Shown here: piece after piece, positions 773 to 64,000 of the stretch | How the letters are laid out: each line of letters begins with the position of its first letter | How positions within the stretch are numbered: the first letter of the stretch is position 1 | IMG/VR virus record: IMGVR_UViG_3300048597_000634 | Span: 141,545-205,544 of that record | Reading direction: 5' to 3' (one strand) | DNA: 64,000 bases | Notes under the pieces: generated by a model | Databases searched by the model: none | What the model was told of the DNA's origin: nothing | What the model saw: only the letters and a program-made list of their open reading frames with translations | Made by a program: the position numbers and the translations under genes

Positions 773-2197
773 TTAATCAGCTAATTGGTCAGCGGTTACT
801 TCCGTTGCACAGCTAAGGCACACCGAGAAGTCTTCTGAATAAGGTACAGAGTCTACGAACATAGTCCACAGCTCCCTGTCCTTAGAATACCCTTGGGTCA
901 AAGACATCAAGTGGTCATTATCTGTATTGTCTACACCACCGTTTAGGTCACTATCAGTCCATAGCATTAGGTCATCAGGGTCTTCTGGTAGTTCGTTATC
1001 GCCGGCGCCGTCTTCGTAATAATAGAGTTCGTCTTCTGTTAGCTGCTGGCAGAACTTATAGGTGGCAATGAGGGCGCACATGAAATAGCTGTGGTTTACG
1101 ATTAGCGCCGCCCAAGGCGTTTCATCTCCAGTAAGGTCAGCGAACAACGCAAAGGACTTGTCTTGCTCCATTAAGTCAGAAGACTTGGTTAGCTCTAGGT
1201 GTGAGTCTAAGCAACGTAACCTTACGCCTTCAGAGTCATTAGTAGAGCGCCGCTTCTGGATATTAGTCTTATGGATTAGTTGCTTAGCCCCGAAAGTTCT
1301 AGTGCTGTGACTATCTAAGGGAATCTTATTGTTTAGGATTAGCGGCGCGTATTCACTAACAGCTCGGCTTAGATACGCTTCAGTGGTGGGCAATAATAAC
1401 CAGTCTTTGCCCGACCATACTTGTACGTGTTTTTGGTCTGTGGTGATTCTGAAGTTAATATCTCCTTTAGTCTGTAGGTTAAGGATACGAACTAAGTGGC
1501 GGGCTGGCACCCCGAAGCTTACGTCACCTTCAATGGTGCATTGAGCGTCTATGCCTACCTTGATAAGACTAATGCCTGTATCGGCGCCGCTGTATTCAGA
1601 GCCGAAGAGCTGTAGTTTGCCTAGTTCTCTGTTGTAGTGGAACCATACTGAGCGGCGGCTAGTGTCATTGGCATACTTACTAAAGGTGTTAAGGATAGCT
1701 GCTCGTCGCCGGAAGGGTATTATGTCAGGCACGTTTATACATCCTGGTAGCCAGTCGGTAAACGTAGGTGGTCTAAACTCATCAAAGCCGCCGGTATAAA
1801 TGGGACTAGTAACCCGGTCAATGAGGTCTGGGTCAGCACTAAGACTACAGTCAGTTATGCATTGGACTTCCACCACATTACGTTTAGTAGCCCTAATTCG
1901 CATTGGGTTACTAGACCACGGCTCTTCTCTCAATTGTTTTATGTCGGTGCCATCTATGAGGAATTGAGACTCACCTACGATGCCAGAGCTAGGTATTACC
2001 TTAGACCCCCAGGTGGAGCGTTTTAGTAGGGCAGTTAAGCGGCAATGGGATTCATCTATTTGGGCTAATCGCATGTAACGTAAGGCTGAGCCAGCGGGGC
2101 TAGCGTCTTCGTCTATGTCCAGCAGAAACTTAACTGCTTGGACTAGTTGGGCACCCGTAGCAAAGTCCAGGTAGTTAAGATTATTGTTCTTGGTCAT
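773..2197 (-). CDS. putative divergent DNA sliding clamp (DnaN/beta-like) with acidic insertion
   Basis: Segments resembling DnaN patterns occur in order (LRYMRL..LTA, FLIDG, FDEFRPP, FGVPARHLVRIL, LIVNHSYFMCAL). The gene lies near the DNA polymerase gene. Recognised by eye only. Confidence 0.45.
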   Translation of the reverse strand: MTKNNNLNYLDFATGAQLVQAVKFLLDIDEDASPAGSALRYMRLAQIDESHCRLTALLKRSTWGSKVIPSSGIVGESQFLIDGTDIKQLREEPWSSNPMRIRATKRNVVEVQCITDCSLSADPDLIDRVTSPIYTGGFDEFRPPTFTDWLPGCINVPDIIPFRRRAAILNTFSKYANDTSRRSVWFHYNRELGKLQLFGSEYSGADTGISLIKVGIDAQCTIEGDVSFGVPARHLVRILNLQTKGDINFRITTDQKHVQVWSGKDWLLLPTTEAYLSRAVSEYAPLILNNKIPLDSHSTRTFGAKQLIHKTNIQKRRSTNDSEGVRLRCLDSHLELTKSSDLMEQDKSFALFADLTGDETPWAALIVNHSYFMCALIATYKFCQQLTEDELYYYEDGAGDNELPEDPDDLMLWTDSDLNGGVDNTDNDHLMSLTQGYSKDRELWTMFVDSVPYSEDFSVCLSCATEVTADQLAD

Positions 2198-2596: not shown

Positions 2597-3468
2597 AGTA
2601 AAGTGAAATCGAAGCGAGCAGCGCGGCTACTCTTATACTGGGTGGAAGCCTTCACTAGACGCATAAAGCTTAGGAACTCATTTGGGTCTCGTATTAATAC
2701 ACAACCGGCCGACCAGGTAGAAATAAATGTATTATATGCGCCGCGCCAACCAGTCGTTTTAGTTGTGTGCAAGTTAATCCCATTCCCTGCTTCTCTAGTA
2801 ACGCGGTCATCCCGAAGGAAATTATGGTTACTATCTCTGACCAGAGTAGCCACGCCGACTTGTTGCATAGCTTCATAGCCCCGGTGCTGTCCTACTGCCC
2901 AAAGTTGTTTATGCTGCCCTAGTTGTAGTCGAGCGGCGCCACCCCGGTTCAAAGGGTTCAGGGTGTAGTACCGACCTGGCTCCGTGGTGCCAACGTATAA
3001 ACAAGACCATTTGGGTTGGTTAGGAGCATCAAACTGCATAATACCCACCAAGTCATTCCAGCGGTCTGGTGCGTCATTATTAGGTGTACCGTTAAGATTT
3101 ACACCTTCAATGCCAATGATATTGATAGCGCCTGGGCGTTGGTCTAAGGTATAACCCCGCTCAACACAACAACGGAATGCACGGTCTATTAGGGAATTAG
3201 TGCTGGGTAGCTTAGGGGTTTTAAGAAGTTTTGCTATGGAGCCAGCGCCGATTAACTCAGGAGATTTCTGATAAATACTCTCTTTAAAAGTATTCCAACC
3301 GCCTTGGGTCATAGGACCATAGATGCCGTCGATACGGTTCTTAGGGTATAACCCGCGGTGGGATAGTAGAGTTTGTAGCTCGGTTAATTCTGTGCTGGTG
3401 AGGGCTTTTACTTCCTTGGGGTCACCTTGGTTCATTAAGGAAGTAAGAGCCGGGTATTGGTTAGACAT
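2578..3468 (-). CDS. endolysin: peptidoglycan-binding domain plus YkuD-like His/Cys catalytic domain
   Basis: ELQTLL..GLY...IDGIYGPMT matches PG_binding_1; GINLH...WSAGC is the catalytic motif. Confidence 0.75.
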   Translation of the reverse strand: MSNQYPALTSLMNQGDPKEVKALTSTELTELQTLLSHRGLYPKNRIDGIYGPMTQGGWNTFKESIYQKSPELIGAGSIAKLLKTPKLPSTNSLIDRAFRCCVERGYTLDQRPGAINIIGIEGVNLNGTPNNDAPDRWNDLVGIMQFDAPNQPKWSCLYVGTTEPGRYYTLNPLNRGGAARLQLGQHKQLWAVGQHRGYEAMQQVGVATLVRDSNHNFLRDDRVTREAGNGINLHTTKTTGWRGAYNTFISTWSAGCVLIRDPNEFLSFMRLVKASTQYKSSRAARFDFTLLWKDWL

Positions 3469-3475
3469 AGCTAAG

Positions 3476-3784
3476 TTATTGGGCTTTCATCTTCAACTTA
3501 GCCTTGAGCTTAGTCAAAACACCTTCGAGGGCGTCTAGCATAGACTTATGTTGGCAGGAACAAACCACGTTCATAGATTCGTTTTCTTCTAGTTCTGCTT
3601 CGTAGTATCCACTGGACGTGGGGCGTGTGAGAACGATGGTGAAGGTCTTAGATTTATCTAGTTTGTTAGTTAAGGTAATCCACACCTCACAGTCATCTAC
3701 CGGTTTAATGGAAGAGTTGAAAGTTTTGGTGCCAACTACCTTTCTAATAGTTCTACGGATACTCTGCTTTTGTTCCTCGGTCAT
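3476..3784 (-). CDS. hypothetical protein
   Basis: 102-aa ORF directly downstream of the last polA exon. Confidence 0.6.
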   Translation of the reverse strand: MTEEQKQSIRRTIRKVVGTKTFNSSIKPVDDCEVWITLTNKLDKSKTFTIVLTRPTSSGYYEAELEENESMNVVCSCQHKSMLDALEGVLTKLKAKLKMKAQ

Positions 3785-3788
3785 TGCT

Positions 3789-5823
3789 TTAGTGAGCCCA
3801 GACGGGCGCTATAGAATAAGAACAGGCACCTTTGATCTCAGAGCCTAGAGCCTCAAACTGTTTGGTTTGCACGGACTCCATTATCTGCTTAATGGTCTCT
3901 GCTATTTCTATAGCTAGCTTATCGGATGTGAAGGCTAATTCTGTGTATAGCCCATCGTCATTCACTTTGCTGTTGTCCCAGTCTATGGTAGATGTACCAG
4001 GAGAGTATATCAAGATTTCCATTTGATGTTGCGCCCCGCCCGATTCCGACGGGGCTCCTTAGCTTACACTAAGGGTCAGACTATATCATCACCAGCTTAT
4101 GCGCTGGTGCAACCTGTTTCGAGACCTCTTGGTCCCTACTCCCTTGCGGGATAGTCGTTGAACCTTGGTCATGTGGTATGACCCTTGGCTGCTGATTGCC
4201 CTGCTTTAGCGTGGGGGTTCCCAGCAATTAAGGTTGTTTACCCACGACAAAATCTATCGTGCACCTGTCCAATCAGTTGAATATCCTCCTGTGTAAACGT
4301 TGAATGGTTATCAATCCACCGTTGGATTAATATCATGGATTCTTTGGTCTGGGTTGCTGAAATGCTTTGGCATTGTTGTTATCGTAGAGCCGTTTAAACT
4401 CTACTTCCGCTGGTCACCCAACGGGTCAGGTCATATCATCGACTCTAGGAGTCGCCGGGCGCTCTTGGATAATATTATAGTTTGGGTCCATATTATCTGA
4501 CCGTCACACCTTCCTAGGGACTAAAACCCATCCTAGGCTTGGCTCGGTATTGCCTGGCTAGACACCAGGGGTCCACCGAATTCACCCGGTTATCACTTAA
4601 TCATCACTGATTAAGGCCACCCATTAGTTGATGGCGCAATTCACAGCAGCCCGCACAGCGGAATCTCCTTCCTTGCCGCCAGACCTTTCTTCAGCTCGAT
4701 GTTGTTATCGTCAGGCTCTTTATCCTGACTTCTATTGGTTTCCCAATAGTCCAGACTATTTCTTAAGCGTTGCCATTTTGACAACCCTTTCGGGCGCTCG
4801 TGGGGATTATTATTGTTGGAACTCAAATCCCTAGTCGTTGAACCTGACGTAGAACCAAAGTCCTCTACGTATTGGCTTAGCGTTACCATAACCTTCTTAT
4901 AAGCGTTAGGCTTTCACTAAATTCACCCGATTTAAGGTAGGCTAACTATTCACTTTACCCACCGGTGCCGGCCTGTCAACGGGACTATACAAAAGCCCCT
5001 GGCGGCGGCTAAAGCACCATAATTCTCCGCCCAATCATAATACCCAGCGTAAGTTTCGCGATGGTTTTTTACCCAGGACTCAGCGACGTCTAGTTTGACA
5101 TGATTACGCTCACTGATTGACTGGGGTGTGCTTAAGTAAAGCATCAATTGCCCCCGGCTTTCACCGAGGATTAGACTATACCTTTACAATCATTGATTGC
5201 ACTCGCCGTGTTACCCAACCTTAGGGTTGAGTCTCAGAGTCACCATAGTGTCGGCACCTTAGGTTATCGTCAGTCGTTGAACCATTCGCGCCGCTTTCAC
5301 GACGCCCTGGCTGCTGATTGGCATCGACGTTAGTCGGAAGCTTTCCAGCAATTGAGCGAGTTTGTTTTCGCCAACTCTACTTAGCGAAATTGAGCGTCTT
5401 AGCCGTGTCACGGGGTTTACGCTTTTCTCCAGGCTGTAGTTTTCGTACTATTTCATCCCACTCGCTTTCAGGTTTTCCTTCTACTAAGTGAGGATGGGTG
5501 CAGTTAGAACAAGTCCAAGAATGGAGGTCCCCTCTAGGGTTTGTATAGGTAGTTCCGTCGGGCAATGCGAGCTTTTTAGGTAATAATTGCGCTTGAGTCA
5601 TGGCCGGGTCTTTACTAAGCACTGTAGCTACTAAAATTTCCTGGGATGAGTAGTCTAAAGATACTATACTTTTCCCCGACCCATTACCACAGGTAAAACC
5701 ATTACGAGGGTTACTCATAAAGGTAATAACCTGTTCTTCGGTTTGAGGCTCGCTTAATACTACGCCGCCGCCCGTGGGGGCTGGGCGGGTAGTCAGTCTT
5801 CGTTTACGTTTCGGTTGGTTCAT
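3789..5823 (-). CDS. polA: family A DNA polymerase, C-terminal (fingers/palm) subunit; 5 exons: 5823-5383, 5144-4957, 4696-4631, 4370-4256, 4019-3789; 346 aa spliced
   Basis: Joined exons total 1041 nt in frame. They restore motif A (SLDYSSQE), motif B (RDTAKTLNFA|MLY), AVNCAI|QS and motif C (QVHD|EILI). Confidence 0.92.
4020..4255 (-). ncRNA. group I intron 4 of polA (236 nt, ORF-less), inserted within motif C (HD|E)
   Basis: P1 CACGAU/GUCGUG; P10 AGAUUUU/GAAAUCU; P AAUUGCUGGGAA; Q AAUCAGCAGCC; R GUUCAACGACUA; S AUGAUAUAGUCU. Confidence 0.93.
4371..4630 (-). ncRNA. group I intron 3 of polA (260 nt, ORF-less)
   Basis: P1 GCCAU/GUGGC; P3 CCGGGUG/CGCCCGG; P4 GAAUUCGGU/AAUACCGAGCC; variant P7 GGUCA/UGACC; terminal G at 4371. 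Confidence 0.88.
4697..4956 (-). ncRNA. group I intron 2 of polA (260 nt, ORF-less)
   Basis: P1 GGUGGGU/GCCUACC with U.G at the splice site; R GUUCAACGACUA; S AAGAAAUAGUCU; terminal G at 4697. Confidence 0.9.
5145..5382 (-). ncRNA. group I intron 1 of polA (238 nt, ORF-less)
   Basis: 5' exon ends in U and the intron ends in G. P1 UUUCGCU/GGCGAAA; P AAUUGCUGGAAA; Q AAUCAGCAGCC; R GUUCAACGACUG; S AAGGUAUAGUCU. Confidence 0.92.
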
Positions 5824-6055
5824 CGTCGGTGTTAGTTAATTCTTTGAGCTTCTGTTTGCCTTTTTTGGTTAGAGACAATGGGGCTGACTGTTTAAGTAAA
5901 TCGAGATGCTTAAGAGACTTAAGGGCGGCGGCGATTTGCTGTTTAGTCAATCCTTCACAGTCCGCAGGATAAGCAATAGGATTATGGTCAATGAACGACC
6001 GTAATACTAACTCCTCATCCTGGGATAGTTGTTGGCTGAAGTGGTTGGGCGTCAT
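5804..6055 (-). CDS. small hypothetical protein, possibly winged-helix
   Basis: 83 aa; C-terminal LSLTKKG resembles a wing motif. Confidence 0.4.
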   Translation of the reverse strand: MTPNHFSQQLSQDEELVLRSFIDHNPIAYPADCEGLTKQQIAAALKSLKHLDLLKQSAPLSLTKKGKQKLKELTNTDDEPTET

Positions 6056-8520
6056 AGTGGCGCGGTGCCTCGTCTGGTTTCTAATTCATTAATAATCTCT
6101 AGTAACTGCCAGAATTTATCATGACTAACATTAAATGCCGCAAGCAGGTCCCAATACTGCATAATCACTTTGCCGTAGAGTAAGCGTCGGTCATCACAAG
6201 ACTTTCTGTTTAATATGCTGTATTCCTTGCACAATCTCAGGAAATTAGGGTGCCAATCAGCTATACGCTTAGTTTCTTTGGGGATATAACGCCCTAGTAG
6301 TGTTCGTATAGCTCGGTACTGCTCGCCGGACATATAAGGGTCTCCAGCAAAACCCAGCACCTCCCCAGAATGGTTAGATTCTAACCACTTAAAGAGCCGA
6401 TCTCTCACTGTGTCTATAGAGGTCCAGTTACATAACCCTGCCTCACATAGCGTTTCAATCTTAGCCGCCGCGTTGGGTGAGATGGTAAACCGGAATGGGT
6501 GGTAATGCTTAATGAAACACCGCGGCGCCATGGACACACAGCTATATTCCTCATCAGTTTTGATAATGGTGTAGATGCCGTTATTTTTTAAGTAAATGAC
6601 CGGCTCCATTAATAGCGCCTCGTTAATATCATTGAGGTCATCTACGGTGTGCTTATGCTCCCATGAACCTACATTGATGACGTCATCGCTAGTGTTCCGC
6701 AGTTGCCGAAGCAGCACTGCTAAGTCAACACCAGTCTTATCCTCTACCTCATCCTTACTAGACTTATTAACGGACTTGGTACTCTTAGTTCTGTATAGCC
6801 CAAGGTAGTTAATGATTGGGCCGTAAGGTTTTAGCTGGTCCTCTAGCATGTTGAGAGCTGAAGAGTCCTGGGATAGCTTTAATACTAGGACGGGGCCGGT
6901 TATCTTATCTCCATAGACCCGCTCAAGTTGTTTTAAGGTTATATCGCGCCCCCGGAGGGCTATTACGGTCAGACCAAGGTTAATAACCTTTAATGGGTTC
7001 ATACGGGCGCGGTCATTGGGCGTTGCCTTGACCTTAGCGTGCCGGTAATAATCCTTAATTTCTTTCCATAACTCGCCATCGTAGTCATAAGACATATCAC
7101 TGTCAGCTAACAGGTAATACTTAGACACGGCGTAACTGCACCCTAGACTCTTGTTGTTAGATAAGTAGTCGTAGATATAACCATGGCTGCCCCGCGGCTC
7201 AATTAGCGTAATCAGACCGTCAGTGTATGTAAAGGATGGGAATTGTTGCTCACTGTCAACCCCGTTAGATACATAACGTAGTTTATGGGGACCAGCATCT
7301 ACGGTGAAGGATAATTTGGCTTCAGCATTGAGATAGTATCTGATACGCTGTGTTAGCGCTGTGCAGTAATTAAGAAAGACCTTGGACACCTCAGCCACAT
7401 TGGTTAAGTCAGCACACTCGTGGTGCTTCTTAATATGCTGGTCAAAGGATTGCTGGACCAATGCACTGAGCCTTCTATTGACCTCAACACTAATGACTTG
7501 CGAGGCTAAAGCTTGTAGTTTGTCTAGGATTGGCTGCGTTTGGTCATTCTTCAACAACTCTTCTCGGCTTGTGTTTAAAGGCAAATATCCAGGCGGTACT
7601 CGAATAACCACCACGCAGTGCTGTTCTGTCGCTGAGCTGCTTCGATACCCTAATAGGTCTGAGCTGAGGATTTCTTCTATAGTTAGCTGTTTGCTTATGG
7701 TAGTAGCGTTACTATACACGTAGCCTTTATTTTGTTTGAGGTAATATAAGGCGCCGCCTAAGTCTAAAATCACACTACCGTAGCTATAACGGTTAGCAGT
7801 GTAATAATCTACAGTTACTGGCGTGTCCGCCTCTTCCTTTGTGTTTAGAGAAAAGTAACGGTGAGGCTTTAAGCCTTGACCAAACCACCAATCATCCTGC
7901 GACGTTAGTGACTCACCTTTAATAAGGTTGAAGTCATAACGAGAGACGTCTATTAAGTCTAGTAATGTATGTATGACTTTACTTGTAGCTACATTACCGA
8001 AAGGGATGGTGACTTCTAACCCAGTGTTATCTGCTTCTACGGGTTCTGGGTCAGACCATATTGTTAACTCAGGGATGTGGTATTCATTCAGGTTACAGAG
8101 GTATAGGGTTTCATAGCCGCCGTGGAAACTACGAATGTAAAACTGTTTAGATAAGGCAAGCGGCGCCAGCCGACCCACACCATAGGCACCAATGGCATTA
8201 GCGTTATCTTCCTTAGTGCTCTCACCAATGTGGGTATATAACCCGTGCATTGATTCAGGACTTAGCCCCGGACCATGGTCACGGATGATTACCCGGTCTA
8301 CTTCTACCGTTATATCTACTGATAATCCAGGACCTACTTCGTTGTTAGCGTCGTAGGCGTTGCTGATGATTTCACGGAAGGCGGCGCTAAGGGGGTCGGC
8401 GTATTGTTGGGTGATTAATAGTTGACTTAGCTTAGCTAACTGCTGGCGTTCTAGCTTAATGCTGAATTCTTTGCCAGACTCGTTCTTGATGGCGGTGCGT
8501 TGTTCTAAGATAGGCCTCAT
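6052..8520 (-). CDS. rIIA: rIIA-like protein with N-terminal GHKL (Hsp90-like) ATPase domain
   Basis: Motifs YADPLSAAFREIISNAYDAN, IRDHGPGLS, STKEDNANAIGAYGVG and TGLEVTIP; 822 aa. Confidence 0.75.
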   Translation of the reverse strand: MRPILEQRTAIKNESGKEFSIKLERQQLAKLSQLLITQQYADPLSAAFREIISNAYDANNEVGPGLSVDITVEVDRVIIRDHGPGLSPESMHGLYTHIGESTKEDNANAIGAYGVGRLAPLALSKQFYIRSFHGGYETLYLCNLNEYHIPELTIWSDPEPVEADNTGLEVTIPFGNVATSKVIHTLLDLIDVSRYDFNLIKGESLTSQDDWWFGQGLKPHRYFSLNTKEEADTPVTVDYYTANRYSYGSVILDLGGALYYLKQNKGYVYSNATTISKQLTIEEILSSDLLGYRSSSATEQHCVVVIRVPPGYLPLNTSREELLKNDQTQPILDKLQALASQVISVEVNRRLSALVQQSFDQHIKKHHECADLTNVAEVSKVFLNYCTALTQRIRYYLNAEAKLSFTVDAGPHKLRYVSNGVDSEQQFPSFTYTDGLITLIEPRGSHGYIYDYLSNNKSLGCSYAVSKYYLLADSDMSYDYDGELWKEIKDYYRHAKVKATPNDRARMNPLKVINLGLTVIALRGRDITLKQLERVYGDKITGPVLVLKLSQDSSALNMLEDQLKPYGPIINYLGLYRTKSTKSVNKSSKDEVEDKTGVDLAVLLRQLRNTSDDVINVGSWEHKHTVDDLNDINEALLMEPVIYLKNNGIYTIIKTDEEYSCVSMAPRCFIKHYHPFRFTISPNAAAKIETLCEAGLCNWTSIDTVRDRLFKWLESNHSGEVLGFAGDPYMSGEQYRAIRTLLGRYIPKETKRIADWHPNFLRLCKEYSILNRKSCDDRRLLYGKVIMQYWDLLAAFNVSHDKFWQLLEIINELETRRGTAPL

Positions 8521-9951: not shown

Positions 9952-12222
9952 TTACTCGTAGTCCCTAAATGCTACACCAATAGGGAATCGTGGCAGACCA
10001 TCATCTGTATAACCATGGTGCTTAATGGTTATTAAGGTTTGTGATTCCGGCGGGTTGTCATAAACTTCCTGCTTCTGTGCTACCGTGCCTTGCATTTTAG
10101 CCTTAAACACCAGACCAATACACGTCGAACACTCAGCTATTAGGTCTTCAACGCCCCGCTGCCCTAACAAGAACCTCTCAAAGACGAACTCATTGGTATC
10201 GTACTCCTTAACCTTCAGTAGGTTGCTAGACCGCTGCCCTTGGTCGTAAGTGCCATTAAGGAGACGGATCATTACACCCTCGTAACCTTCGCTAACGTAG
10301 TGCATGTGAAGCTCCATCACTTCCTCCTTGTTGTCGCAGGTAGAGGTAGGTAGGGCTTTAACATGCTGCCAACTAATAGTGGATGTCAGGCGGCGCACCT
10401 CCAACTCCCGCTCTAGCTGCTTCTGATCGTTGACAATGTCGTAGACCCAGAACTCTAGCTGTAAGGATTGCTCTTGTTGTTTCTTAACAGCAGAGACAAT
10501 CTCTTGGAAGGTTAGCTCTCTAGTGAATATCTCCCCGTCGAGGATGACAGGCTGGGTGAGCTTCTCTTCTAGTTCCTTTTTGATGTGCCCTAGCGTAGTG
10601 TACTTTTTGCCGGTGCGGGACAGGAAAGTAACGGTCTTACCGTCGAACACAGCCAGGGCTCTACAATTGTGAATAACAACGCCGTTAGCGACGTAGTTAT
10701 GATTGTCTTCTACCTCTAGGTCGTACTTAGTGTATGGGGCAGAGCTACGCTTAGCTTTAGTTTTATGAAACTTACTCCAAGCGAACTCGTCTTTTGCGGC
10801 TTGCACGTAGTCTTCCGTAGGGAAGTAATATTTGTACTCTACTCCTTTACAATGGCACTTCCGTAAACTGTTAAGTAAATAAAGAGTGTCTTTAGTGTTG
10901 AACTGTAGGAATATTCCAGAGCAATTAGTGGTGTCGACACGTTTATCCCGTATTTCTGTAGGCGTGCAATGCCACTTTTTCTGAAAGTATTCGACAAACA
11001 CTTTTATCTGGTCGAGAGAGTGCTTATGTGTGGATATACTTAGCACCGGTGTGTTAGGGTTTCCGTTGTTAAAGCTTATACTTCCGTCATCTGCAATCCA
11101 TAGACTTAGAGCTTCTGGGCTCATGTATTTACACATGTTATCGTATGTGATGTGCTTCCTGTGCCCTAGCCGCTTACAGTGCCCTGTAAAGTAGATTAAC
11201 TCGATAGGAAAGTCTGTCTTACTTAATGCGACACTATCAAACCGATAGCCTTTAGACCCATAACCTGTTGTGTATTCGGTACACCTACCATCTAAGTTTA
11301 GAGTCTTAACCTTAAAATCGAATAGCTCTTTATTGGTATGACTAAAAGCTAATCTGTAACTGGTACCGCTACCTCTTTTTTCTATGTTCATTATGCTATC
11401 CCCCAGTAAGGTGCCAAAGACAAGAGACGTTCTATACTCGGAGAAGCAATTTACGTAGATTAAATCTTCCTTCTCATTAAGGTCGCGAGCTTCTTTCCAG
11501 CCTTGGTTGGTAAAGTATTTATGGTTGGCAGTTGTCTTCAATCGTGTACCTGTAGGCAGAGTAACATCTAACCAATCTTTGTACTTAGAGCTTCCGTTAT
11601 TAAACCAATTTGTTATGGGCTTGTACTCAAAGACCTTTTTGGCTTCGTTGTAAGAGAGCACTTCCACCTTCATTTTGGTCTCTACTATCTCTTCAATGCT
11701 TATTAGTCCTTTATTAGTAGAGACTAGAGTTTTACCGTAGACGCAGCCGTCCAATTTGGGCTGCACAAGGCAGCGGTACTTAACTTTATTCCACTTCACG
11801 GACTGGGCTAGCATTGGCTTCCGCATTCCGTTAGCGTCAGTGTTAAAGGTAGGTAGAGCGGCTTCTAAAGCATTCTTTAAATGCGAATAGAGAGTATTCT
11901 CGTAGGAGAAAGCTGACGCGGCTGTTCCTTCTACCCAAGAGATGCCTAGGTCTTCTAAAGACTTGTAGCCCTCGTCTTGCTTCTTCTTCCAGTCGCTGCG
12001 GGCTTCAGACTCGGCTTGTTGTTGGGGTGTCGTGGCGTTACTTCTGTTTAAGTTCTTACCTTCGCTAATGGTCTTGATGTTAACGAGGGGTTTGTCGGTG
12101 CCGTACTGTCCTGAGGTCTTGATGACCTGATACTCGTCGGAGCCGAGGACAGCTTCAGTCTCGATCTCCCAATAGGCTATAGATAGATTCTTTGTGCGCT
12201 TGTAAAGTATTGGTAGTTTCAT
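9952..12222 (-). CDS. ATP-dependent DNA ligase precursor (about 396 aa mature) containing an intein
   Basis: QPKLDG|C...HN|CRA, ILDGEIF, FWVYD, EGVMIR, LLKVK, and C-terminal PRFP. Confidence 0.92.
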   Translation of the reverse strand: MKLPILYKRTKNLSIAYWEIETEAVLGSDEYQVIKTSGQYGTDKPLVNIKTISEGKNLNRSNATTPQQQAESEARSDWKKKQDEGYKSLEDLGISWVEGTAASAFSYENTLYSHLKNALEAALPTFNTDANGMRKPMLAQSVKWNKVKYRCLVQPKLDGCVYGKTLVSTNKGLISIEEIVETKMKVEVLSYNEAKKVFEYKPITNWFNNGSSKYKDWLDVTLPTGTRLKTTANHKYFTNQGWKEARDLNEKEDLIYVNCFSEYRTSLVFGTLLGDSIMNIEKRGSGTSYRLAFSHTNKELFDFKVKTLNLDGRCTEYTTGYGSKGYRFDSVALSKTDFPIELIYFTGHCKRLGHRKHITYDNMCKYMSPEALSLWIADDGSISFNNGNPNTPVLSISTHKHSLDQIKVFVEYFQKKWHCTPTEIRDKRVDTTNCSGIFLQFNTKDTLYLLNSLRKCHCKGVEYKYYFPTEDYVQAAKDEFAWSKFHKTKAKRSSAPYTKYDLEVEDNHNYVANGVVIHNCRALAVFDGKTVTFLSRTGKKYTTLGHIKKELEEKLTQPVILDGEIFTRELTFQEIVSAVKKQQEQSLQLEFWVYDIVNDQKQLERELEVRRLTSTISWQHVKALPTSTCDNKEEVMELHMHYVSEGYEGVMIRLLNGTYDQGQRSSNLLKVKEYDTNEFVFERFLLGQRGVEDLIAECSTCIGLVFKAKMQGTVAQKQEVYDNPPESQTLITIKHHGYTDDGLPRFPIGVAFRDYE
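10666..11745 (-). mobile_element. intein (360 aa) with LAGLIDADG homing endonuclease
   Basis: Begins CVYGKT and has block B TTANHKY. LAGLIDADG-like motifs FGTLLGDS and LWIADDGS. Ends YDLEVEDNHNYVANGVVIHN, followed by Cys+1. Confidence 0.93.
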
Positions 12223-21910: not shown

Positions 21911-22250
21911 TAGAAGGCACCTTAGTGAATTTGGTAGGTCTAGTTAGCTTGTAATCTAGAGTTCGCTCATCAATGAAGTGGCGATGATTAACGTAGCCTT
22001 TCCAGTACTCTTCGACCCGTGCATCAAACTCTACTATGTCGCCTGGCATTAAACATAATGAGTCTAAAGTCTTGCCCACAGTGAACCAAATATGGTCTGT
22101 TACGATTTGACCAGTAGTCATTAATACTACGTCTTTAAGGAGTATTGTCGGCAATGGAGGACCTTTAAATGCCGCCTTCGTACCAAACTTCTCCACTACT
22201 CCTCTGAACCTCAGTCTTTGTCCGTGTAGCTTTTTAAGCTCTTTTCTCAT
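21900..22250 (-). CDS. conserved hypothetical phage protein
   Basis: 116 aa; OB-fold-like composition (TDHIWF...FDARVEEY...DYKL). Confidence 0.6.
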   Translation of the reverse strand: MRKELKKLHGQRLRFRGVVEKFGTKAAFKGPPLPTILLKDVVLMTTGQIVTDHIWFTVGKTLDSLCLMPGDIVEFDARVEEYWKGYVNHRHFIDERTLDYKLTRPTKFTKVPSNVE

Positions 22251-23011
22251 AGCATATCTCCATAGAGTAGTAATGCTGTGGCATATAGCTTATCTATGGC
22301 TCCCACTTGCTCTGCGTAACTTAAGACATTTAACTTTTGATTCTTTGCCCGAGTCACTAAGTCTACGTGATGGCGGTAACGATACTCTTTGTACAAGTTG
22401 GTCCACAGGTAGCGATATTCTTCACCGGTGCGATAAGAATAAGATCGAATTAACTCGTTGATGGCGCTTCTTGTTGATTTTTCTGGCACCACCTCTGTAC
22501 AAGCAGGTAGTGCCTTAAGTTCTGCATCTACGCGGGAGAAGCGGTCTTCAATCTTATCTAACCGTTCATCATGTTTCAGAAGGTGTTGTTGTTGTAGAGC
22601 CATATTCCGCTCAAGGTCTACTGTCAGTTGAACGGAGGCTAAAAGTTGTTCCGCCAGTGTCATCTGTTTAATAGACACTGTGCCTTTGGTAAGCAATTCT
22701 TCTACCCAGCCATCTACCTGTACAGCTAACTCAGGAGAGCACCACTGAGCAAATCGGATACAGGCCCGGCGATGCGCCCATGTACCACGTTCCTCATTAG
22801 TCCCTCCAGATTCATTAACCTGGATTATTTGGTCTACCGGAATTCCGATAGACTCCTCTAACGCTTGTAGATATTGGTTCGTAGTTTTATTTGCTAGCCA
22901 ATGTCCCACTGACTTGCCAGTAGCGTGAGCCATATCTGTTAGGCTGCCGTACTGGTCTTTCTCCCTCCAACGGATAGATTTGTTATTCCATATCTTGATG
23001 ATGTTCGACAT
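22247..23011 (-). CDS. KilA-N domain DNA-binding protein
   Basis: LTDMAHATGK...WL...T..Y...GTWAH...FAQWCSPELAVQV. Confidence 0.85.
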   Translation of the reverse strand: MSNIIKIWNNKSIRWREKDQYGSLTDMAHATGKSVGHWLANKTTNQYLQALEESIGIPVDQIIQVNESGGTNEERGTWAHRRACIRFAQWCSPELAVQVDGWVEELLTKGTVSIKQMTLAEQLLASVQLTVDLERNMALQQQHLLKHDERLDKIEDRFSRVDAELKALPACTEVVPEKSTRSAINELIRSYSYRTGEEYRYLWTNLYKEYRYRHHVDLVTRAKNQKLNVLSYAEQVGAIDKLYATALLLYGDML

Positions 23012-28929: not shown

Positions 28930-29766
28930 TTAGTTAGGGCTAAGTGCTATCTCGGCCAGAATAAGTTCTTCTTTGAGCCTTGCTATTTCGCGGTCTTGCT
29001 GCATTATCTTCTTACTTTGCGAATCCACTAATGCTCGTAATCCCATCAACTCAGCTTGCATCTCTTTCTTAGATGGACCAGCGGCGCGGCTATTACCTTC
29101 TACCTCTGCCCAATACATATCCAACGTTAGAGTATCAGGGTCAAACCCGTCGGTCACCTTAGTTTTAAACCAGCGGATAATCTTTAAGGTACGACTTACA
29201 GCAATACTTTTCCTCGTTATCTTTTGGACGTCATCATCTTGTAGTCTTAATTTAATGACTATATCCCAGTTCTCAGCTAAGTAGATATAGTCATATGCGG
29301 TACCTTTAGCCCAACCGCTCTTCTTTAGATAATCTTCCCATCCAGTATAAGTTCCCATTTCTGTAGTTATAGGAACTTGATTTGTCGCCTTCCTATACAT
29401 CTTCCGTAGTTCTATAAGATTAAGACCTGTGTTCCTATGATGCAGAAGCCATTTTGACTTTGTAGTGCAGGGCTTGTATTTTAGGTACAATGGGTGCAGA
29501 TTTGAGTCATCTAGCTCGTTGTACGTGGTGTTTAGTACCGGATTGAGTTTTCTTACTAACTGGAATTCTAAAAGATCTAGGCTATCTATTTCTGCTAGTT
29601 GATAATGTATAGCGTAGTCTATACCCTCACTTGACAAGAATCGTCTCACTTCATGGCTTCTCAGTCTACTGTGTAGGCTCTTAGCTTTCCCTACATAAAG
29701 CACCTCTTTATTTTGTGTATTTACTAAGTAGTAGACCCCAGACTTATTCGGAATATCACTTAACAT
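28930..29766 (-). CDS. GIY-YIG nuclease domain fused to paralog family A domain
   Basis: IPNKSGVYYL...LYVGKAKSLHSRL.SH...E...NP.LN, followed by the family A motifs. Confidence 0.75.
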   Translation of the reverse strand: MLSDIPNKSGVYYLVNTQNKEVLYVGKAKSLHSRLRSHEVRRFLSSEGIDYAIHYQLAEIDSLDLLEFQLVRKLNPVLNTTYNELDDSNLHPLYLKYKPCTTKSKWLLHHRNTGLNLIELRKMYRKATNQVPITTEMGTYTGWEDYLKKSGWAKGTAYDYIYLAENWDIVIKLRLQDDDVQKITRKSIAVSRTLKIIRWFKTKVTDGFDPDTLTLDMYWAEVEGNSRAAGPSKKEMQAELMGLRALVDSQSKKIMQQDREIARLKEELILAEIALSPN

Positions 29767-39057: not shown

Positions 39058-40347
39058 TCAAGTCTGTGACAAGTAATTTTTAATCCACTGCAGGCGCTGC
39101 TGTTCATCTAGGGCAGTAAACTCTTCGACGTTCTCCCGCACGTAGTCCACCAATGGGTAGTATTCTTCATCGACTACCTTCTTAAACCCTTCAGTCATAA
39201 TCTTAGAGGTGTCAGGGTTGCGGGCCAACCACTTGTTAGTCAAGTAGTAGGGGCTTTTAACCTTGGCGCTGACACCCTGCTTCGTGTAAAAGACATAGCC
39301 TTCGTGGGTGACAGTCTTAACCTTTTCCAGGAGCTCTCCGACGGTGGTGTGGTGGTGAGACACTGCAGTGGTGCCAAGCATGCGACTGAACTCGTCGAGT
39401 TGCTTGGGGTCTGCCTTAGGTTTGGAGTCCCAGTCTTTGGTGCGGACTGCTAGCAGGTAAAGACCTGGTTCTTCTCGAACAATGTGAGGATCTTCTGGGC
39501 TGACGCACTCAAAGATGAAGCTTTTATTCTGGTAGGAGAAGCAAAGTTCCTTGAGTTGTGCCTCGATGCCTTGGGCTCTGATCACATCCCAACCGTAGCC
39601 TACAAACTTAGAAGTCAGAGAGCCTGTAGTGGATAGGAGCAGTTTATCGTTGTGCCACGTCACACATAACATAAAGCCATTGACCTTACGGAAGGCGGTC
39701 ACCTTGGTGTCAAGGTCTAGCACAGGCGCTTCCTTTTCTACTCCGTAGTTGTAGATCTTGATTAGCGGTAAGGAGATGGGGTTGTAGTCTTCATCCACGA
39801 CAGCACCACGGCACATCTCCAGATAAGGATTCCAGTGCCAACCGTAATACACCTTCTTAGTGTATTTGAGGACATAAAGTCCGTCGTGAGCAGCGGTGCG
39901 GCGCACCCATTTAGGGTTGTTCTCCACATACTGCTTCAGCCCCGCTTGGTTGAACGGGATGTCGTCGGCAATGTCGTGCTCGAAGCGCTCCCGCATACTT
40001 TTCATAGTGCCTGCTGGAATGTCATGCACAGAACCAAAGTTGTTTTGGCATTCAATAACCTGAGGCACGATCTTAAACTCTTTAGCCAGGTCGAAGTAGG
40101 GACGCAGTTCCCATTTGGTGGTAAAGGTGTTGGAGACCACGGCATGCTCCCCTTCAGCTAGCCACGCTCTGGTGCGGGCTAAACAGTCAGCGTGAGCTTC
40201 TTTTAGTTTGTCTCGGTCGAACTTGTAACCGTCTTCTGTGTTGAAGTATTGGTCGGCTTCAAATACTTGGCCGTCGGCACTCGCTAGAGTATGGGCTAGG
40301 GTGGTTTTTCCAGACCCTGGCAGTCCTCGAATGATAGTTAATTTCAT
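39058..40347 (-). CDS. polynucleotide kinase (P-loop) fused to T4 Rnl1-type RNA ligase
   Basis: RGLPGSGKTT...EADQYF...VVSNTF, followed by MCRG, RKVNG, FIFE, EGYV and KVKSPYY. Confidence 0.85.
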   Translation of the reverse strand: MKLTIIRGLPGSGKTTLAHTLASADGQVFEADQYFNTEDGYKFDRDKLKEAHADCLARTRAWLAEGEHAVVSNTFTTKWELRPYFDLAKEFKIVPQVIECQNNFGSVHDIPAGTMKSMRERFEHDIADDIPFNQAGLKQYVENNPKWVRRTAAHDGLYVLKYTKKVYYGWHWNPYLEMCRGAVVDEDYNPISLPLIKIYNYGVEKEAPVLDLDTKVTAFRKVNGFMLCVTWHNDKLLLSTTGSLTSKFVGYGWDVIRAQGIEAQLKELCFSYQNKSFIFECVSPEDPHIVREEPGLYLLAVRTKDWDSKPKADPKQLDEFSRMLGTTAVSHHHTTVGELLEKVKTVTHEGYVFYTKQGVSAKVKSPYYLTNKWLARNPDTSKIMTEGFKKVVDEEYYPLVDYVRENVEEFTALDEQQRLQWIKNYLSQT

Positions 40348-40719
40348 AATTTCCTCAACACTAATTTCCTTTAAAGGTTTGTTCTTTTCTTACCCAGTCT
40401 TCGATGTAAAGCTTAGTTAAGTCCTCTACCTCTTTCTCTGTGAAGAGGTCTGTTCTCTCGTAATAGGCTTTGACGACTTCGTATAGAGAGGGCTCAAATT
40501 GTAGGTCGTTATCTGGGTCAAAGTCAGCCTTGAGGATGAAAGGGCGAATCTCTGTGAATCTTTTATCCATTGGTTCTTAAGGTTTAAAGTTACAGACTTG
40601 AGAGCGTAGATCTTCGCAGGCGATCTCAAAGCCCATAGAGATGTTAAGTAGACTGGAGATCGCCAGGAGCATCAGCAGGATGATGCTGATAATACAGAGC
40701 TTGACGACAAGTTTCTCAA

Positions 40720-41517
40720 TCATTGAGGTGTAGTATTCCTTTGTGGAGAAGCACCGTCGAAGATTACTTCTACTCTGTTTACAACCTTATTAAAGGAAGG
40801 CATAGGTAGATAGTCAATGTGGTGCCGCTCAATAGGTTTAGTTGGTCGGTACTCGGCGGGTATGTCCGCCATTTCTGCAGGCTCTAGGAGCACTAATTTT
40901 CTTTGTATAAAGCTGCCGCGCTTAAACTGCTCTGGGTAGTCGTTGAAGTTGATGCCATGCTCTTGCCACAGCATCTCTTGTAACTCCTTACTGTTCTTAT
41001 TCTGCATCTGCTTGTGGCTGATACGTGCTCTGGCAGCCATCGAGATTGCATTTCTTGTAGCGTCCAACTCTCTCCAGAGGATGGCGTTGGTGGCTTCTTC
41101 TTTGGTAGGCACGGTAAACGCTCTGCAGTCAAACACAGCGGGGATGTCTACCTTAAAGTTGGGTATATACTCTGGTCGAAGTTGGTTAAACCACGCACTA
41201 GCCGTGGAAGCCAGCACAGAGATTAGCTTTTGTTTCTTCCCCCCAAAGGGGAGCTCTTTTAACAGGTTCTCTTCGTAGAGTACAAGGTTGATCTCATCGG
41301 ACTGGGTGTAGCCAATGCGGGCGTTGGTCTCTGAGACTAACCGTTTAGTAACCTCTACCATCAAGTCGATCAATCTCTGGTCATAGGGACGAGCGAGCCC
41401 TTTAGTAAAACTACTAAAGCACTTGCCGTCTACTCTTACGATGATGGGCAGTAGAGGCAAAAAGCGCCCTTTACTCTCGTAGCCTTTCATCCGATCGCCG
41501 AGGGAATCTTTGTTCAT
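40720..41517 (-). CDS. thg1: Thg1-like 3'-5' nucleotidyltransferase (tRNA-His guanylyltransferase family)
   Basis: DRMKGYE, RVDGKCFSSFT, YTQSDEINL, KLISVLAS, FDCRAF, WRELDATRNAI, FKRG. Confidence 0.9.
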   Translation of the reverse strand: MNKDSLGDRMKGYESKGRFLPLLPIIVRVDGKCFSSFTKGLARPYDQRLIDLMVEVTKRLVSETNARIGYTQSDEINLVLYEENLLKELPFGGKKQKLISVLASTASAWFNQLRPEYIPNFKVDIPAVFDCRAFTVPTKEEATNAILWRELDATRNAISMAARARISHKQMQNKNSKELQEMLWQEHGINFNDYPEQFKRGSFIQRKLVLLEPAEMADIPAEYRPTKPIERHHIDYLPMPSFNKVVNRVEVIFDGASPQRNTTPQ

Positions 41518-41624
41518 AGTTTATTTCCTTAGCATATCTAAAAGCATTCTGTCCTCTAGCGCTTGTCTTAACCCTGTCTTTACTTTCATGTAGGCTTCGT
41601 AGGGGCTATAGCTATAGTTGGTGA

Positions 41625-42104
41625 CTAAAACTGATTCTTTTCTAAGGGTTCTACCCGCTCTTTGGCAGAGGTAGGTATGCTGTACAGCAAAAGTTGGTGT
41701 GTTTCTTTGGGCAGGGGAGTGTTGAGCACTCGCACCTTAATCACCTCGTCGTATTCGTGGGTCCAGTAATAGGTAACGGTCTTCGTTTCTGCTATCAGTA
41801 GGTCTTGGAACACCGGGGCTAGCACATCGTAATAGCTCAGCTCCGGCGACACTTTGATACTTTGGAGGATAGTTCTTAACCCGTATTGGATGTGTGCGAG
41901 GGGAGTAGCGAGCTCATCAATGTGCAAGGGCAGTTTGACGCTCTTTCGCTCTCCGGTGACTACCCTCTGGAAGAGATTGCGGAGCACATACTCCTTTGTT
42001 TCTCCGTAGGGTTTTGGGTAGCGAGTCTCACTTATTTCTAATGCTGCGAAGACTTGGTCGTAGACCTCTTTGTCCACTTGAAAATACTGGTTATCCATAT
42101 GCAA
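41625..42104 (-). CDS. hypothetical protein
   Basis: 159-aa ORF. Confidence 0.55.
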   Translation of the reverse strand: MHMDNQYFQVDKEVYDQVFAALEISETRYPKPYGETKEYVLRNLFQRVVTGERKSVKLPLHIDELATPLAHIQYGLRTILQSIKVSPELSYYDVLAPVFQDLLIAETKTVTYYWTHEYDEVIKVRVLNTPLPKETHQLLLYSIPTSAKERVEPLEKNQF

Positions 42105-42131
42105 CTAAATGGTGGAGAGTGGTCACTAGGC

Positions 42132-42545
42132 TTAGTATAATCGTAAGCGGCGTAGGTGCCGTAATCTTGTTTTCAAGGAGTCATTCCACTCTGCTTCTTC
42201 CTTGGCTCTTATCTTCTCTAGGTTGGCAGCTTTTAGCTTTGCTACGGTGGGTTGGAGGTAGTCTCGCAGTTGATCTAGCGTTTCCTCAATAAGACGATCT
42301 AAATCTGCATGCTCTCTTATCGCGTAGATGTTTCTTTCCTCTACGTGCTCTTTCAGCCCGGGGCTTTGCCAATAGATACTGAGCGTTCCCATGTAGTGGT
42401 CGACACTCAGTTTTAGAAAGGTTACGAGCTCATTTGGGCGGCAACATAGAGTGTCTGCAAGGTCGTCAATCACCATTTTTGCGCTCTTTACCAAGATGTC
42501 TTCGGTAAACGGCGCTATTAACGGAGTGTCTCTATGCATATGCAA
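42132..42545 (-). CDS. hypothetical protein, paralog of 30861-31292
   Basis: Colinear similarity over the full length. Confidence 0.7.
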   Translation of the reverse strand: MHMHRDTPLIAPFTEDILVKSAKMVIDDLADTLCCRPNELVTFLKLSVDHYMGTLSIYWQSPGLKEHVEERNIYAIREHADLDRLIEETLDQLRDYLQPTVAKLKAANLEKIRAKEEAEWNDSLKTRLRHLRRLRLY

Positions 42546-42600
42546 TTAGGAGGATGATCAGAGTAGCCAATAGAATAGCCCAAAAGGTATCTTTCATTGG

Positions 42601-43608: not shown

Positions 43609-43612
43609 AGGT

Positions 43613-60178: not shown

Positions 60179-60191
60179 TGTGTTGATTAGA

Positions 60192-61924: not shown

Positions 61925-61959
61925 GGTTAGGTAAGAGTGTTGTAAAAAGAAGAGCGAAT

Positions 61960-63269: not shown

Positions 63270-63626
63270 TTAGGCAGCTTTGTCTTCTACAGGAGGAGCA
63301 ATGGCGCGGAGTTCTTTGTTAATCAAACCTAGCTGCTCGTCAACGATGGCGCAGACAATATACTCATCAGAGCGCATCTTCTGCACCAAGCTCACAGTCT
63401 TATCCTTCTGGTCATTGAGGATTTCCTGTACAGGGCGGCCCATTAAGTCTTCAATGGCATGGGCGGCGCTAAACACCTTCCCTGTATTTTTATCCTTGGC
63501 AGTCATGTGGTTGGTGAATAGGTCTTCTAGGGTAGCCAAGACTTGTAAGGCTACTTGCTCGTCGCTACTGCGGGTGGTGTAGTCAAACTCAGGGGCTTCG
63601 GGCGCGGGCGTTTGGGTAGTAGTCAT
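63270..63626 (-). CDS. hypothetical protein
   Basis: ORF with likely start MTTTQ near 63626. Confidence 0.55.
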   Translation of the reverse strand: MTTTQTPAPEAPEFDYTTRSSDEQVALQVLATLEDLFTNHMTAKDKNTGKVFSAAHAIEDLMGRPVQEILNDQKDKTVSLVQKMRSDEYIVCAIVDEQLGLINKELRAIAPPVEDKAA

Positions 63627-64000
63627 TATTTCTTGAGGTAAAAGAACCGAGGGCACATGGTATTAACCGTATCGTATATCCCCGAGAAAAACCTTAGCTT
63701 AATTGATGAGTTAGCCGGTTTGTTAGCTATTGCTACGAACATACCGGGAAAGTTTTCTTCTTCTCGGTAGATGTATTTGCTAAAACCATTATCTAACGCT
63801 TGCTTTTGGGTAGATACTAAACCACCATGTACGTCGAGGCAAATATAAGCGCCAACTAATCCACCAAGGTTGTAGCTGATGCGTGGGTCTTGCACGGCTT
63901 CTTCCGCATCGTAGCTAGGTGTAGTTAAGGCAGGGCCGGCGTTGATGGTAAGTAGCGCGCCGGCGGCTACCAGAAAGTTTGAGAGATAATGATGCAACAT
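63626..64000 (-). CDS. hypothetical exported protein
   Basis: Hydrophobic N-terminus; start lies at the window edge. Confidence 0.45.
   Translation of the reverse strand: MLHHYLSNFLVAAGALLTINAGPALTTPSYDAEEAVQDPRISYNLGGLVGAYICLDVHGGLVSTQKQALDNGFSKYIYREEENFPGMFVAIANKPANSSIKLRFFSGIYDTVNTMCPRFFYLKK

Follow-up and report, generated by a model that had tools for sequence, protein, structure and literature searches.

We describe a gene that very probably encodes the C-terminal subunit of a two-chain family A DNA polymerase (PolA) in an uncultivated jumbo phage, itself probably a cyanophage. The gene lies on the minus strand at positions 5823-3789 of the window, by which we mean the whole 64,000-nucleotide stretch analysed (positions 141,545 to 205,544 of IMG/VR record IMGVR_UViG_3300048597_000634). 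Textbooks treat family A polymerases as single-chain enzymes. The clade examined here cuts the polymerase domain itself, so that primer-binding elements and catalytic motifs are found on different proteins. Split PolA as such is already known; what is new is that the split falls inside the polymerase domain, that the halves are far apart, and that the gene for the C-terminal half (C half) holds four introns.

Five exons, all on the minus strand, join into a spliced frame of 346 codons, the count given by a preliminary description of this DNA. That description held that only the motif A to C half of a polymerase is encoded at this locus, with a basic leader that starts about 55 residues before motif A, and our reading of the exons bears this out. 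Exon 1 (5383..5823; 147 codons), for which we found 66 relatives, opens with MNQPKRKRRL and continues through an R..F motif (NPRNGF) and motif A (SLDYSSQE, residues 55-62) to the start of motif B (RDTAKTLNFA). Homologue alignment places the remainder of motif B and the fingers, to TGRHRW, in exon 2 (4957..5144; 62 codons plus 2 nt), AEERSGGKEGDSAVRAAVNCA in exon 3 (4631..4696; 1 nt, 21 codons and 2 nt) and the stretch from QSISATQTKESM to IGQVHD, the start of motif C, in exon 4 (4256..4370; 1 nt plus 38 codons). Exon 5 (3789..4019; 76 codons and the stop) runs from EILIYSPG to APVWAH and is 49-53% identical to the C termini of two relatives, P0004 and L005. Exon lengths (441, 188, 66, 115 and, including the stop, 231 nt) and phases fit one another. 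The 346-residue product corresponds to part of the palm plus the fingers; motifs A, B (RDTAKTLNFA|MLY, exons 1-2) and C (QVHD|E, exons 4-5) are intact, and the family A catalytic residues are all present.

In profile searches the exons were used singly, and P0004, an intron-free orthologue of 339 aa, served as a stand-in for the whole spliced C half. PF00476 reached 17.7 bits on exon 1 alone, against a curated cut-off of 34.3, and matched none of the remaining exons singly, while P0004 scored 96.4 bits; phrog_35406 was matched by exon 1 at E 1.7e-4 and by P0004 at E 4.2e-15. The family A model matches to exon 1 begin only just before motif A (PF00476 142-196, phrog_17 990-1071), in keeping with the earlier statement that this half lacks an exonuclease, a thumb and a TGR/PNLQ region, all of which we found on the product of a separate 454-aa gene. 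One segment of the leader, PTGGGVVLSEPQ, was considered as a remnant of the TGRLSS..PNLQ region and rejected: the real motif is on the other half, and the segment is variable among C halves. No relatives of exon 1 were found among IMG/VR contigs, and the sole match among GenBank phages was one distant fused PolA. Scanning for promoters and terminators round the C-half gene gave background level only.

The four intervening sequences are group I introns (model RF00028, gathering score 50 bits) that contain no open reading frame. Intron 1 (5145..5382, minus strand; 238 nt, 65.3 bits) is within motif B between NFA and MLY. Intron 2 (4697..4956, minus strand; 260 nt, 77.3 bits) follows RW(V), at a site that also holds an intron in the relative L006. 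Intron 3 (4371..4630, minus strand; 260 nt) lies within the N..IQG motif and, at 41.9 bits (E 2e-10), is the only one of the four below the gathering score. Intron 4 (4020..4255, minus strand; 236 nt, 77.3 bits) separates the catalytic D and E of motif C, the site of an ORF-bearing intron in L005. All four insertion points fall in conserved motifs: motif B for intron 1, the position after GRxRW for intron 2, N..IQG for intron 3 and the D-E pair of motif C for intron 4. Each intron has a P1 helix with a U.G pair at the 5' splice site (7, 7, 5 and 6 bp for introns 1 to 4), ends in a terminal G and meets an in-frame stop within 1-5 codons, in intron 1 after a single codon. The junctions themselves are supported by relatives: P0004 is continuous across all four, and P0001 (77% identical) reads through junctions 1-3, among them NFA|M and that of intron 3, and at intron 4 runs into the intron as RFCRG. 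We infer that the introns would self-splice and that the C half would be spliced and expressed in this phage. Across the clade there are five intron insertion sites, and across the family three intein sites.

The other half was found just past the end of the window, on the same contig and strand. The 205.5-kb IMG/VR record of which the window forms part is itself trimmed from a 214-kb metagenome contig, and the 8.4 kb trimmed away hold an intact 454-aa gene for the N-terminal half (N half), at virtual window positions 64006-65370 (L087:7067-8431; minus strand). It is placed on the same contig by a 10,375-bp identical overlap between L087 and the window. The gene ends 6 bp past window position 64000, where it adjoins the last gene of the window (124 aa; 63626..64000, minus strand), and lies 58.2 kb upstream of the C half with about 58 kb of other genes between them. 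Its product matches PF01612 at 49.4 bits (cut-off 23.6), with the Exo I (DxE), Exo II (N...D) and Exo III (Y...D) residues present in LALDTET, GANLKFD and YAANDV, and matches PF00476 positions 70-130 at 43.9 bits, carrying the thumb and the first palm element, TGR...PNLQQ..GR. The C terminus reads ...TGRLACRSPNLQQQSGR, followed by a 14-residue tail and a stop. It also matches phrog_31382 (E 2.8e-28). This is the exonuclease and thumb reading frame ending near PNLQ that the preliminary description had proposed to look for.

Within the 205.5-kb record, no N half was detected with the PF00476, phrog_17 and PF01612 profiles, by phmmer --max with Microcoleus phage PolA, P0014, P0022, P0059 and the L003 N half, or with a five-sequence profile that was also run on all stop-to-stop frames of at least 20 aa. 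Its absence there results from the trimming and not from absence of the gene: the 'provirus' trimming of IMG/VR removed the N half, and database users would misjudge this phage as having half a polymerase. Two candidates inside the record were rejected, namely the ORF at 1331-2278 (a weak match, E 0.087), which has no exonuclease motifs, and a 756-aa ORF that matched an intein-bearing relative and proved to be an intein-containing DNA ligase. A complete polA elsewhere, which the preliminary description had named as a finding against its reading, was not found in the contig, nor was a PolB or Pol III alpha in the genome, which is incomplete (CheckV estimates the trimmed record at 91%). As the genome showed no sign of another DNA polymerase family, the two-chain PolA would be the replicative polymerase of the phage.

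The two halves fit together as parts of one enzyme. They tile phrog_17 without gap or overlap, the N half covering 667-986 and the C half starting from 990, and on PF00476 the C half covers positions 140-344. Alignment with Klenow and Taq puts the break after the PNLQN(IPxR) element and ahead of the R..F strand running into motif A, at about residues 585-595 in Taq numbering or about 678-690 in E. coli Pol I. Co-folding the halves, as had been suggested, was done with a cognate intron-free pair of orthologues from another contig (the L003 N half with P0004) as opposed to the phage's own spliced protein, and gave 0.86, against 0.00 for the best of 3 controls; of 78 solved complexes 51 attained that mark, as against 2 of 108 mismatched pairs. 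The partners had pLDDT values of 82 or more, and the runs shared 87% or more of their contacts. The predicted interface includes contacts of the N-half tail (426-446) with residues 27-44 of the C half and with its motif C region. In this predicted complex the halves fit together in the manner of a single-chain enzyme, although some of the score may come from what the predictor has learned of the single-chain fold, since fused homologues and solved PolA structures exist. The N- and C-half proteins would then assemble non-covalently and form one active site from both chains, which makes this clade a natural system for studying how a PolA active site is put together from two polypeptides.

The split recurs in relatives. 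Among the 66 matches to exon 1, 26 are proteins of 285-360 aa, for which length is the sole ground for counting them as split forms or standalone C halves; a basic leader opens each of those whose sequence was read completely. In the clade, standalone C halves measure about 290-348 aa and N halves about 446-454 aa. Wherever enough flanking sequence could be read, both halves were present: on the contig studied here, in L003, L006, L007 and L089, each with a separate N-half gene nearby, on the L005/L008 contig, and in the cultured phage Ma-LMM01. The spacing of the two genes in relatives is 0.3-3 kb, and reaches 47 kb in the closest relative, L005/L008. Against the latter, protein identity is 78% for the C half and 89% for the N half, with pN of 0.15 and 0.08, respectively, and pS of about 0.74, which is saturated and makes dN/dS a rough guide only. 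Judged by these substitution rates, both halves are under purifying selection, even when 47-58 kb apart. A natural question for such phages is whether separate genes permit separate regulation. The tree of C halves needs 2-3 state changes, with many of its forks open, and is compatible with fused forms that are either ancestral or re-fused.

Immediately upstream of the C-half gene, and overlapping its start by 20 nt, is a gene for an 83-aa winged-helix protein (5804..6055, minus strand), followed by an 822-aa rIIA-like GHKL ATPase gene (6052..8520, minus strand; phrog_612, E 3.5e-35), which is context and not part of the polymerase. The preliminary description had called the upstream genes unrelated; this holds for the rIIA-like gene, and fails for the winged-helix gene, a conserved companion of the split polymerase. 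A winged-helix protein of 72-85 aa is encoded beside one or other half in all 7 loci with enough flank, often with overlapping stop and start codons. The half that it accompanies, N or C, differs between genomes; the slot upstream of it that is taken here by the rIIA-like gene is occupied in L006 by the N half. The predicted model resembles generic MarR/PadR-type folds only, with no match at E <= 0.001. A three-part enzyme is possible but unlikely; in it the winged-helix protein would serve as a bound accessory subunit, such as a DNA clamp or tether making up for the split palm. Alternatively, the insertion of its gene might have been what caused the fission. A 474-aa neighbour has a poor predicted fold (pLDDT 40.6) and gave a weak atlas lead only; it has no similarity to gp176, the clamp of Ma-LMM01.

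Three other explanations would account for a half-length gene. The preliminary description had offered RNA trans-splicing by half-introns as a second option beside a two-subunit PolA, and protein trans-splicing through a split intein would likewise join the halves into one polypeptide. The family does attract such elements, as seen from the four cis introns here and from inteins in relatives: a mini-intein at GRLA|C in the N half of the closest relative, one in P0059 at SPN|C...HN|CQQ, next to the break, and one in P0061 at IQG|C. Nevertheless, each gene has its own start and stop. The N half closes with its tail and stop codon, the C half begins with an ATG and a leader conserved among standalone C halves, and the winged-helix gene overlaps that start. 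Neither exon 1 (E <= 1) nor the N half (E <= 0.01) matches an intein or Hint family, in agreement with the earlier statement that no split-intein C-fragment is visible. Beyond the four cis introns, no half-intron was detected and the genome yielded no group I signal other than one extra match at E 0.3. With about 58 kb of other genes between the halves as well, we consider their later joining extremely improbable and RNA trans-splicing, as originally suggested, not to be borne out.

It is also very unlikely that the C-half gene is in decay, a remnant overrun by selfish introns, severed from its partner and yielding no working protein. Four introns within about 1 kb of coding sequence, a partner gene 58 kb distant and the score of exon 1 alone below the Pfam cut-off might give that impression, yet the five exons all have open frames in phase with one another, the residues of motifs A, B and C are intact, and the introns retain ribozyme cores, P1 helices and the terminal G. 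The pN of 0.15 against saturated pS was moreover obtained with a relative whose halves are likewise far apart, and no other polymerase was detected. Lastly, the products could act separately, the N half as an independent exonuclease for proofreading or repair, the C half in some other role, alone or with another partner. The counterparts in Ma-LMM01 are annotated apart, as '3'-5' exonuclease' and 'DNA polymerase', and the genes can be distant and are not always co-located. However, the N half is not an exonuclease alone, having the thumb of the polymerase domain and the TGR/PNLQQ primer-binding element, and these are what the C half is without. The exact tiling of the family models, the predicted packing and the presence of both halves in each locus read with enough flank likewise leave separate action with little probability. 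A two-subunit PolA with its N half encoded elsewhere, the other option originally put forward, is the reading favoured by the intact 454-aa gene, the tiling, the recurrence of the split and the cognate co-fold.

The nearest cultured counterpart of this two-chain PolA is in the Microcystis phage Ma-LMM01, where gp180 ('3'-5' exonuclease', 427 aa), gp179 (51 aa) and gp178 ('DNA polymerase', 320 aa) show the same break: the N part stops past TGR...QQ, and the C part begins shortly ahead of motif A. The two halves of our phage match phrog_31382 and phrog_35406, to which the Ma-LMM01 N and C halves correspond. Protein identity, however, is only about 26%, and the Ma-LMM01 genes are adjacent and intron-free, in contrast to the 58.2 kb and the four C-half introns here. 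A small ORF lies between the halves there (gp179), without similarity to our winged-helix protein. Both gp180 and gp178 are reported to be middle genes expressed in infection (PMC5780444).

Other phages split PolA elsewhere. In T7-like cyanophages (S-SBP1-like), PolA is encoded in two genes with an exo/pol split, presented as the first seen in PolAs, and the AlphaFold complex superposes on single-chain relatives (Czernecki et al. 2023, PMC10201439); LUZ24-like phages had by then an annotated polymerase in two pieces, 'DNA polymerase part I/II', of 171 aa and 546 aa (PMC3890496). As here, a family A polymerase from two genes is thought to reassemble. Their cut falls at the exonuclease-polymerase boundary, whereas ours is inside the polymerase domain, at PF00476 position ~130-140, with thumb and palm-fingers on different chains. 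Fused relatives have the same family and motif order in single polypeptides, namely the rare metagenomic P0014 and P0022 (746-747 aa) and the PolA of Microcoleus phage My-WqHQDG (700 aa); in these, PNxQQ and the R..F motif are connected by a variable linker, exactly at the place where split forms are cut. Replication enzymes of other polymerase families are also found in separate, sometimes distant genes and are presumed to reassemble, as for the split PolB of MIJ3, which uses a split intein (PMC6892783), and the split Pol III alpha of jumbo phages (PMC7824862).

The introns, too, have parallels. Group I introns of phage polymerase genes interrupt the most conserved coding segments and vary in presence among relatives, as in SPO1, Bastille and other Bastillevirinae, T7-like PhiI and Pf-WMP3, and likewise in Twort orf142 (PMC11878797, PMC3428280). 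The published cases compared have at most three introns per gene, in contrast to four here, none with a homing-endonuclease ORF, in 1,041 coding nt. With its five intron and three intein sites, this polymerase family offers a natural system for examining the influence of selfish introns and inteins on an essential gene.

The family A DNA polymerase (PolA) of this phage is encoded in two halves, whose genes lie 58.2 kb apart on one strand. The stretch at 5383-5823 is the first exon of the minus-strand C-half gene; it opens with MNQPKRKRRL, reaches motif A (SLDYSSQE) at residues 55-62, and breaks off within motif B, of which it encodes the first part (RDTAKTLNFA). Just downstream, three group I introns were matched at Rfam gathering level (5392-5152, 4988-4732 and 4284-4057, minus strand; 65-77 bits), and a search of the whole 205-kb genome added a fourth at 41.9 bits (E 2e-10; window 4407-4640), with no further significant group I match. 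With boundaries fixed by P1 helices and homologues, the gene comprises five minus-strand exons (5823-5383, 5144-4957, 4696-4631, 4370-4256 and 4019-3789) and four introns (5382-5145, 4956-4697, 4630-4371 and 4255-4020). The exon phases are compatible and the joined frame has 346 codons, matching the length given for the spliced ORF in the preliminary description. In all four introns P1 spans 5-7 bp and places a U.G pair at the splice site, the last nucleotide is G, and a stop occurs in frame within 1-5 codons; none contains an ORF, and their cores are akin but diverged (mean column identity 59%).

Family searches, run exon by exon, placed exon 1 at positions 142-196 of PF00476 (17.7 bits, under the cut-off) and 990-1071 of phrog_17 (E 2.7e-8), while exons 2 and 4 matched later parts of the PHROG models hit by exon 1. 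An exhaustive search found 66 relatives of exon 1. The intron-free relative P0004 (339 aa, 47% identical, with a similar basic N-terminal leader) is continuous over all four junctions (NFA-MIY, RWV-AEER, V-QG and VHD-EL) and matches positions 140-344 of PF00476 (96.4 bits); in the relative P0001 (77% identical) introns 1-3 are absent, and its frame runs into intron 4. Based on these junction reads and the PF00476 coverage of P0004, the exon model and the earlier proposal that only the motif A-C half is encoded here are sound.

Searches of the 205,544-bp record with family models, single sequences and an N-half profile found no exonuclease, thumb or TGR/PNLQ region. In related loci the halves are close: L003 has a 446-aa gene with PF01612 and PF00476 3 kb upstream of P0004, in L006 a single 72-aa gene stands between a 449-aa N half and the C half, and the halves are separated by 1.7 kb in L007 and 1.3 kb in L089. 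In the closest relative, a 97.5-kb contig (loci L005 and L008), 47 kb separate the C half from the N half, which is upstream of it and adjoins a gene block orthologous to the last genes of the window. Via the window's last gene we found the source metagenome contig (213,981 bp), of which the IMG/VR 'provirus' record is a copy minus the last 8.4 kb. A stretch of this contig, L087, is identical to the window across a 10,375-bp overlap and holds an intact PolA N half of 454 aa (L087:7067-8431, minus strand), six bases past window position 64000. The N-terminal half, which had been suggested to be encoded elsewhere, is thus on the same contig and strand. The omitted 8.4 kb (L087:1-8436) is phage DNA, syntenic with L008, and also contains RecA, two genes upstream of the N half; provirus trimming created a false 'missing half'. 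The record ends exactly at a gene start (window 64000). L087 and L008 come from one sample, on two related contigs that stop at an identical base; over their first 80 nt (L087:1-80, L008:1-80) they match fully, as against 76% identity overall. This shared end probably reflects an assembly break at a common stretch, not a genome terminus.

The N half matches PF01612 (49.4 bits), PF00476 at positions 70-130 (43.9 bits), phrog_17 at 667-986, and phrog_31382; it carries the Exo I-III residues and ends in ...GAATGRLACRSPNLQQQSGR followed by 14 residues and a stop. Since its phrog_17 coverage stops at 986 and that of the C half begins at 990, the two tile the family models. In alignment with Klenow and Taq, PNLQN is the element at which the N half stops (Taq about 585), and NPRNGF of the C half aligns with the RRAF strand preceding motif A (Taq about 595). 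Because one half stops at PNLQN and the other resumes before motif A, these alignments place the break inside the polymerase domain; a variable linker occupies exactly this site in the fused relatives P0014 and P0022 and in Microcoleus phage PolA. The N-half chain carries the exonuclease, thumb and first palm element; motifs A, B and C are on the C-half chain, along with the remaining palm and the fingers.

Two explanations had been offered for such an arrangement, a two-subunit enzyme or RNA trans-splicing. The genome-wide group I search gave no sign of a half-intron, which speaks against trans-splicing, and neither exon 1 nor the N half shows signs of a split intein, as had been noted for the C-fragment. 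A two-subunit enzyme is consistent with co-folding, performed with the cognate intron-free L003 pair (446-aa N half and P0004) in place of this phage's own: the pair passed at 0.86, a mark attained by 51 of 78 solved complexes and 2 of 108 mismatches, while the best of three controls scored 0.00. Partner pLDDT reached 82 or more, and at least 87% of contacts agreed between runs, with the N-half tail and thumb base set against C-half residues 27-44 and the motif C region. The result supports binding of the halves, although known single-chain structures may account for part of the pass. Against L005/L008, where the halves are likewise far apart, protein identity is 78% for the C half (pN 0.15) and 89% for the N half (pN 0.08), with saturated synonymous sites (pS about 0.74), pointing to strong purifying selection on each. 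As no PolB and no significant match to Pol III alpha was found in the genome, an incomplete assembly, the split PolA is probably the replicative enzyme. The strongly basic leader of the C half (KRKRR; residues 1-16, window 5776-5823, minus strand) is common to standalone C halves with N termini read (P0002, P0003, P0004, L005 and L007) and lies outside the confident co-fold interface; DNA contact and docking are possible roles.

Clade-wide, the C half has five intron sites: at motif A (L005, with a LAGLIDADG ORF), motif B (this phage), after RWV (this phage and L006, with an ORF in the latter), N..IQG (this phage), and motif C (this phage and L005, with an ORF in the latter). L003 and L007 are intron-free. 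Intein sites are GRLA/C (L008 N half), SPN/C (relative P0059) and IQG/C (relative P0061). The mini-intein of the L008 N half (L008:7085-8845), of ~128 residues between GRLA and CRTPNLQQ, is absent from the N half of this phage.

Split phage polymerases are a known kind, given several precedents. In the cultured Microcystis phage Ma-LMM01 the break is the same: gp180, of 427 aa, carries the annotation '3'-5' exonuclease' and gp178, of 320 aa, 'DNA polymerase', with the 51-aa gp179 between them. A passage of PMC5780444 lists gp180 and gp178 as middle genes needed for replication, and the passages found in PMC3201878 and PMC5780444 do not name these genes as a split polymerase domain. An exo/pol gene split in T7-like cyanophages was presented as the first in PolAs (Czernecki et al. 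2023; PMC10201439), LUZ24-like phages have a 'part I' of 171 aa and a 'part II' of 546 aa (PMC3890496), polymerases are split in OM43 phages as well (PMC10580990), and split PolB and split Pol III alpha are on record for jumbo phages. New here are the clade-wide record of a break within the polymerase domain, the extreme distance between the genes of the two halves, and the four introns of the C-half gene, where the literature we found gives at most three per phage gene.

The genes upstream of the C half had been called unrelated. This holds for the rIIA-like gene at 6052-8520 (minus strand; N-terminal GHKL ATPase domain), which occupies the place of the N half in L006 and is arranged identically in L005, but not for the 83-aa gene at 5804-6055 (minus strand), which overlaps the C-half start by 20 nt. 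Its homologues adjoin a polymerase half in 7/7 loci with a readable flank: the N half in L003 and L007, both halves, from between them, in L006 and L089, and the C half in this phage, L005 and the further locus L091. The protein is 79% identical to the L005 copy, is modelled as a winged helix (pLDDT 71), and has only generic MarR/PadR-like matches; the ancestral order was probably N half, winged helix, C half, and the protein may be a third polymerase component. A 474-aa protein at 773-2197 (minus strand), without Pfam or PHROG match, has conserved homologues downstream of the C half in L003, L005, L006 and L007, and a weak counterpart there in L089 (15% identity). A weak atlas lead (score 0.90, rank 29) hints at the Pol III beta clamp, but the AlphaFold model of the protein was too poor (pLDDT 40.6) to bear on this.

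Elsewhere in the window, an ATP-dependent DNA ligase (9952-12222, minus strand; PF01068, phrog_114) is interrupted at about residues 160-520 by an intein that bears a LAGLIDADG endonuclease. A minus-strand cluster of RNA-repair flavour (39058-46310) comprises an AAA_33 kinase-like gene (39058-40347), a Thg1-like gene (40720-41517), an RNA ligase with a PHA02142 OB domain (42829-43608) and an RlaP nucleotidyltransferase (45357-46310). Also recognisable on the minus strand are KilA-N, GIY-YIG endonuclease, Bro-N/ANT, PhoH with a PIN domain, and ThyX (Thy1) genes (22247-23011, 28930-29766, 59324-60322 and 60575-62622). The sole long plus-strand gene seen amid the minus-strand genes encodes TnpB/OrfB_IS605 (49082-50386; Cas12f-like TNB), of which a second copy lies at genome positions 2990-4270.
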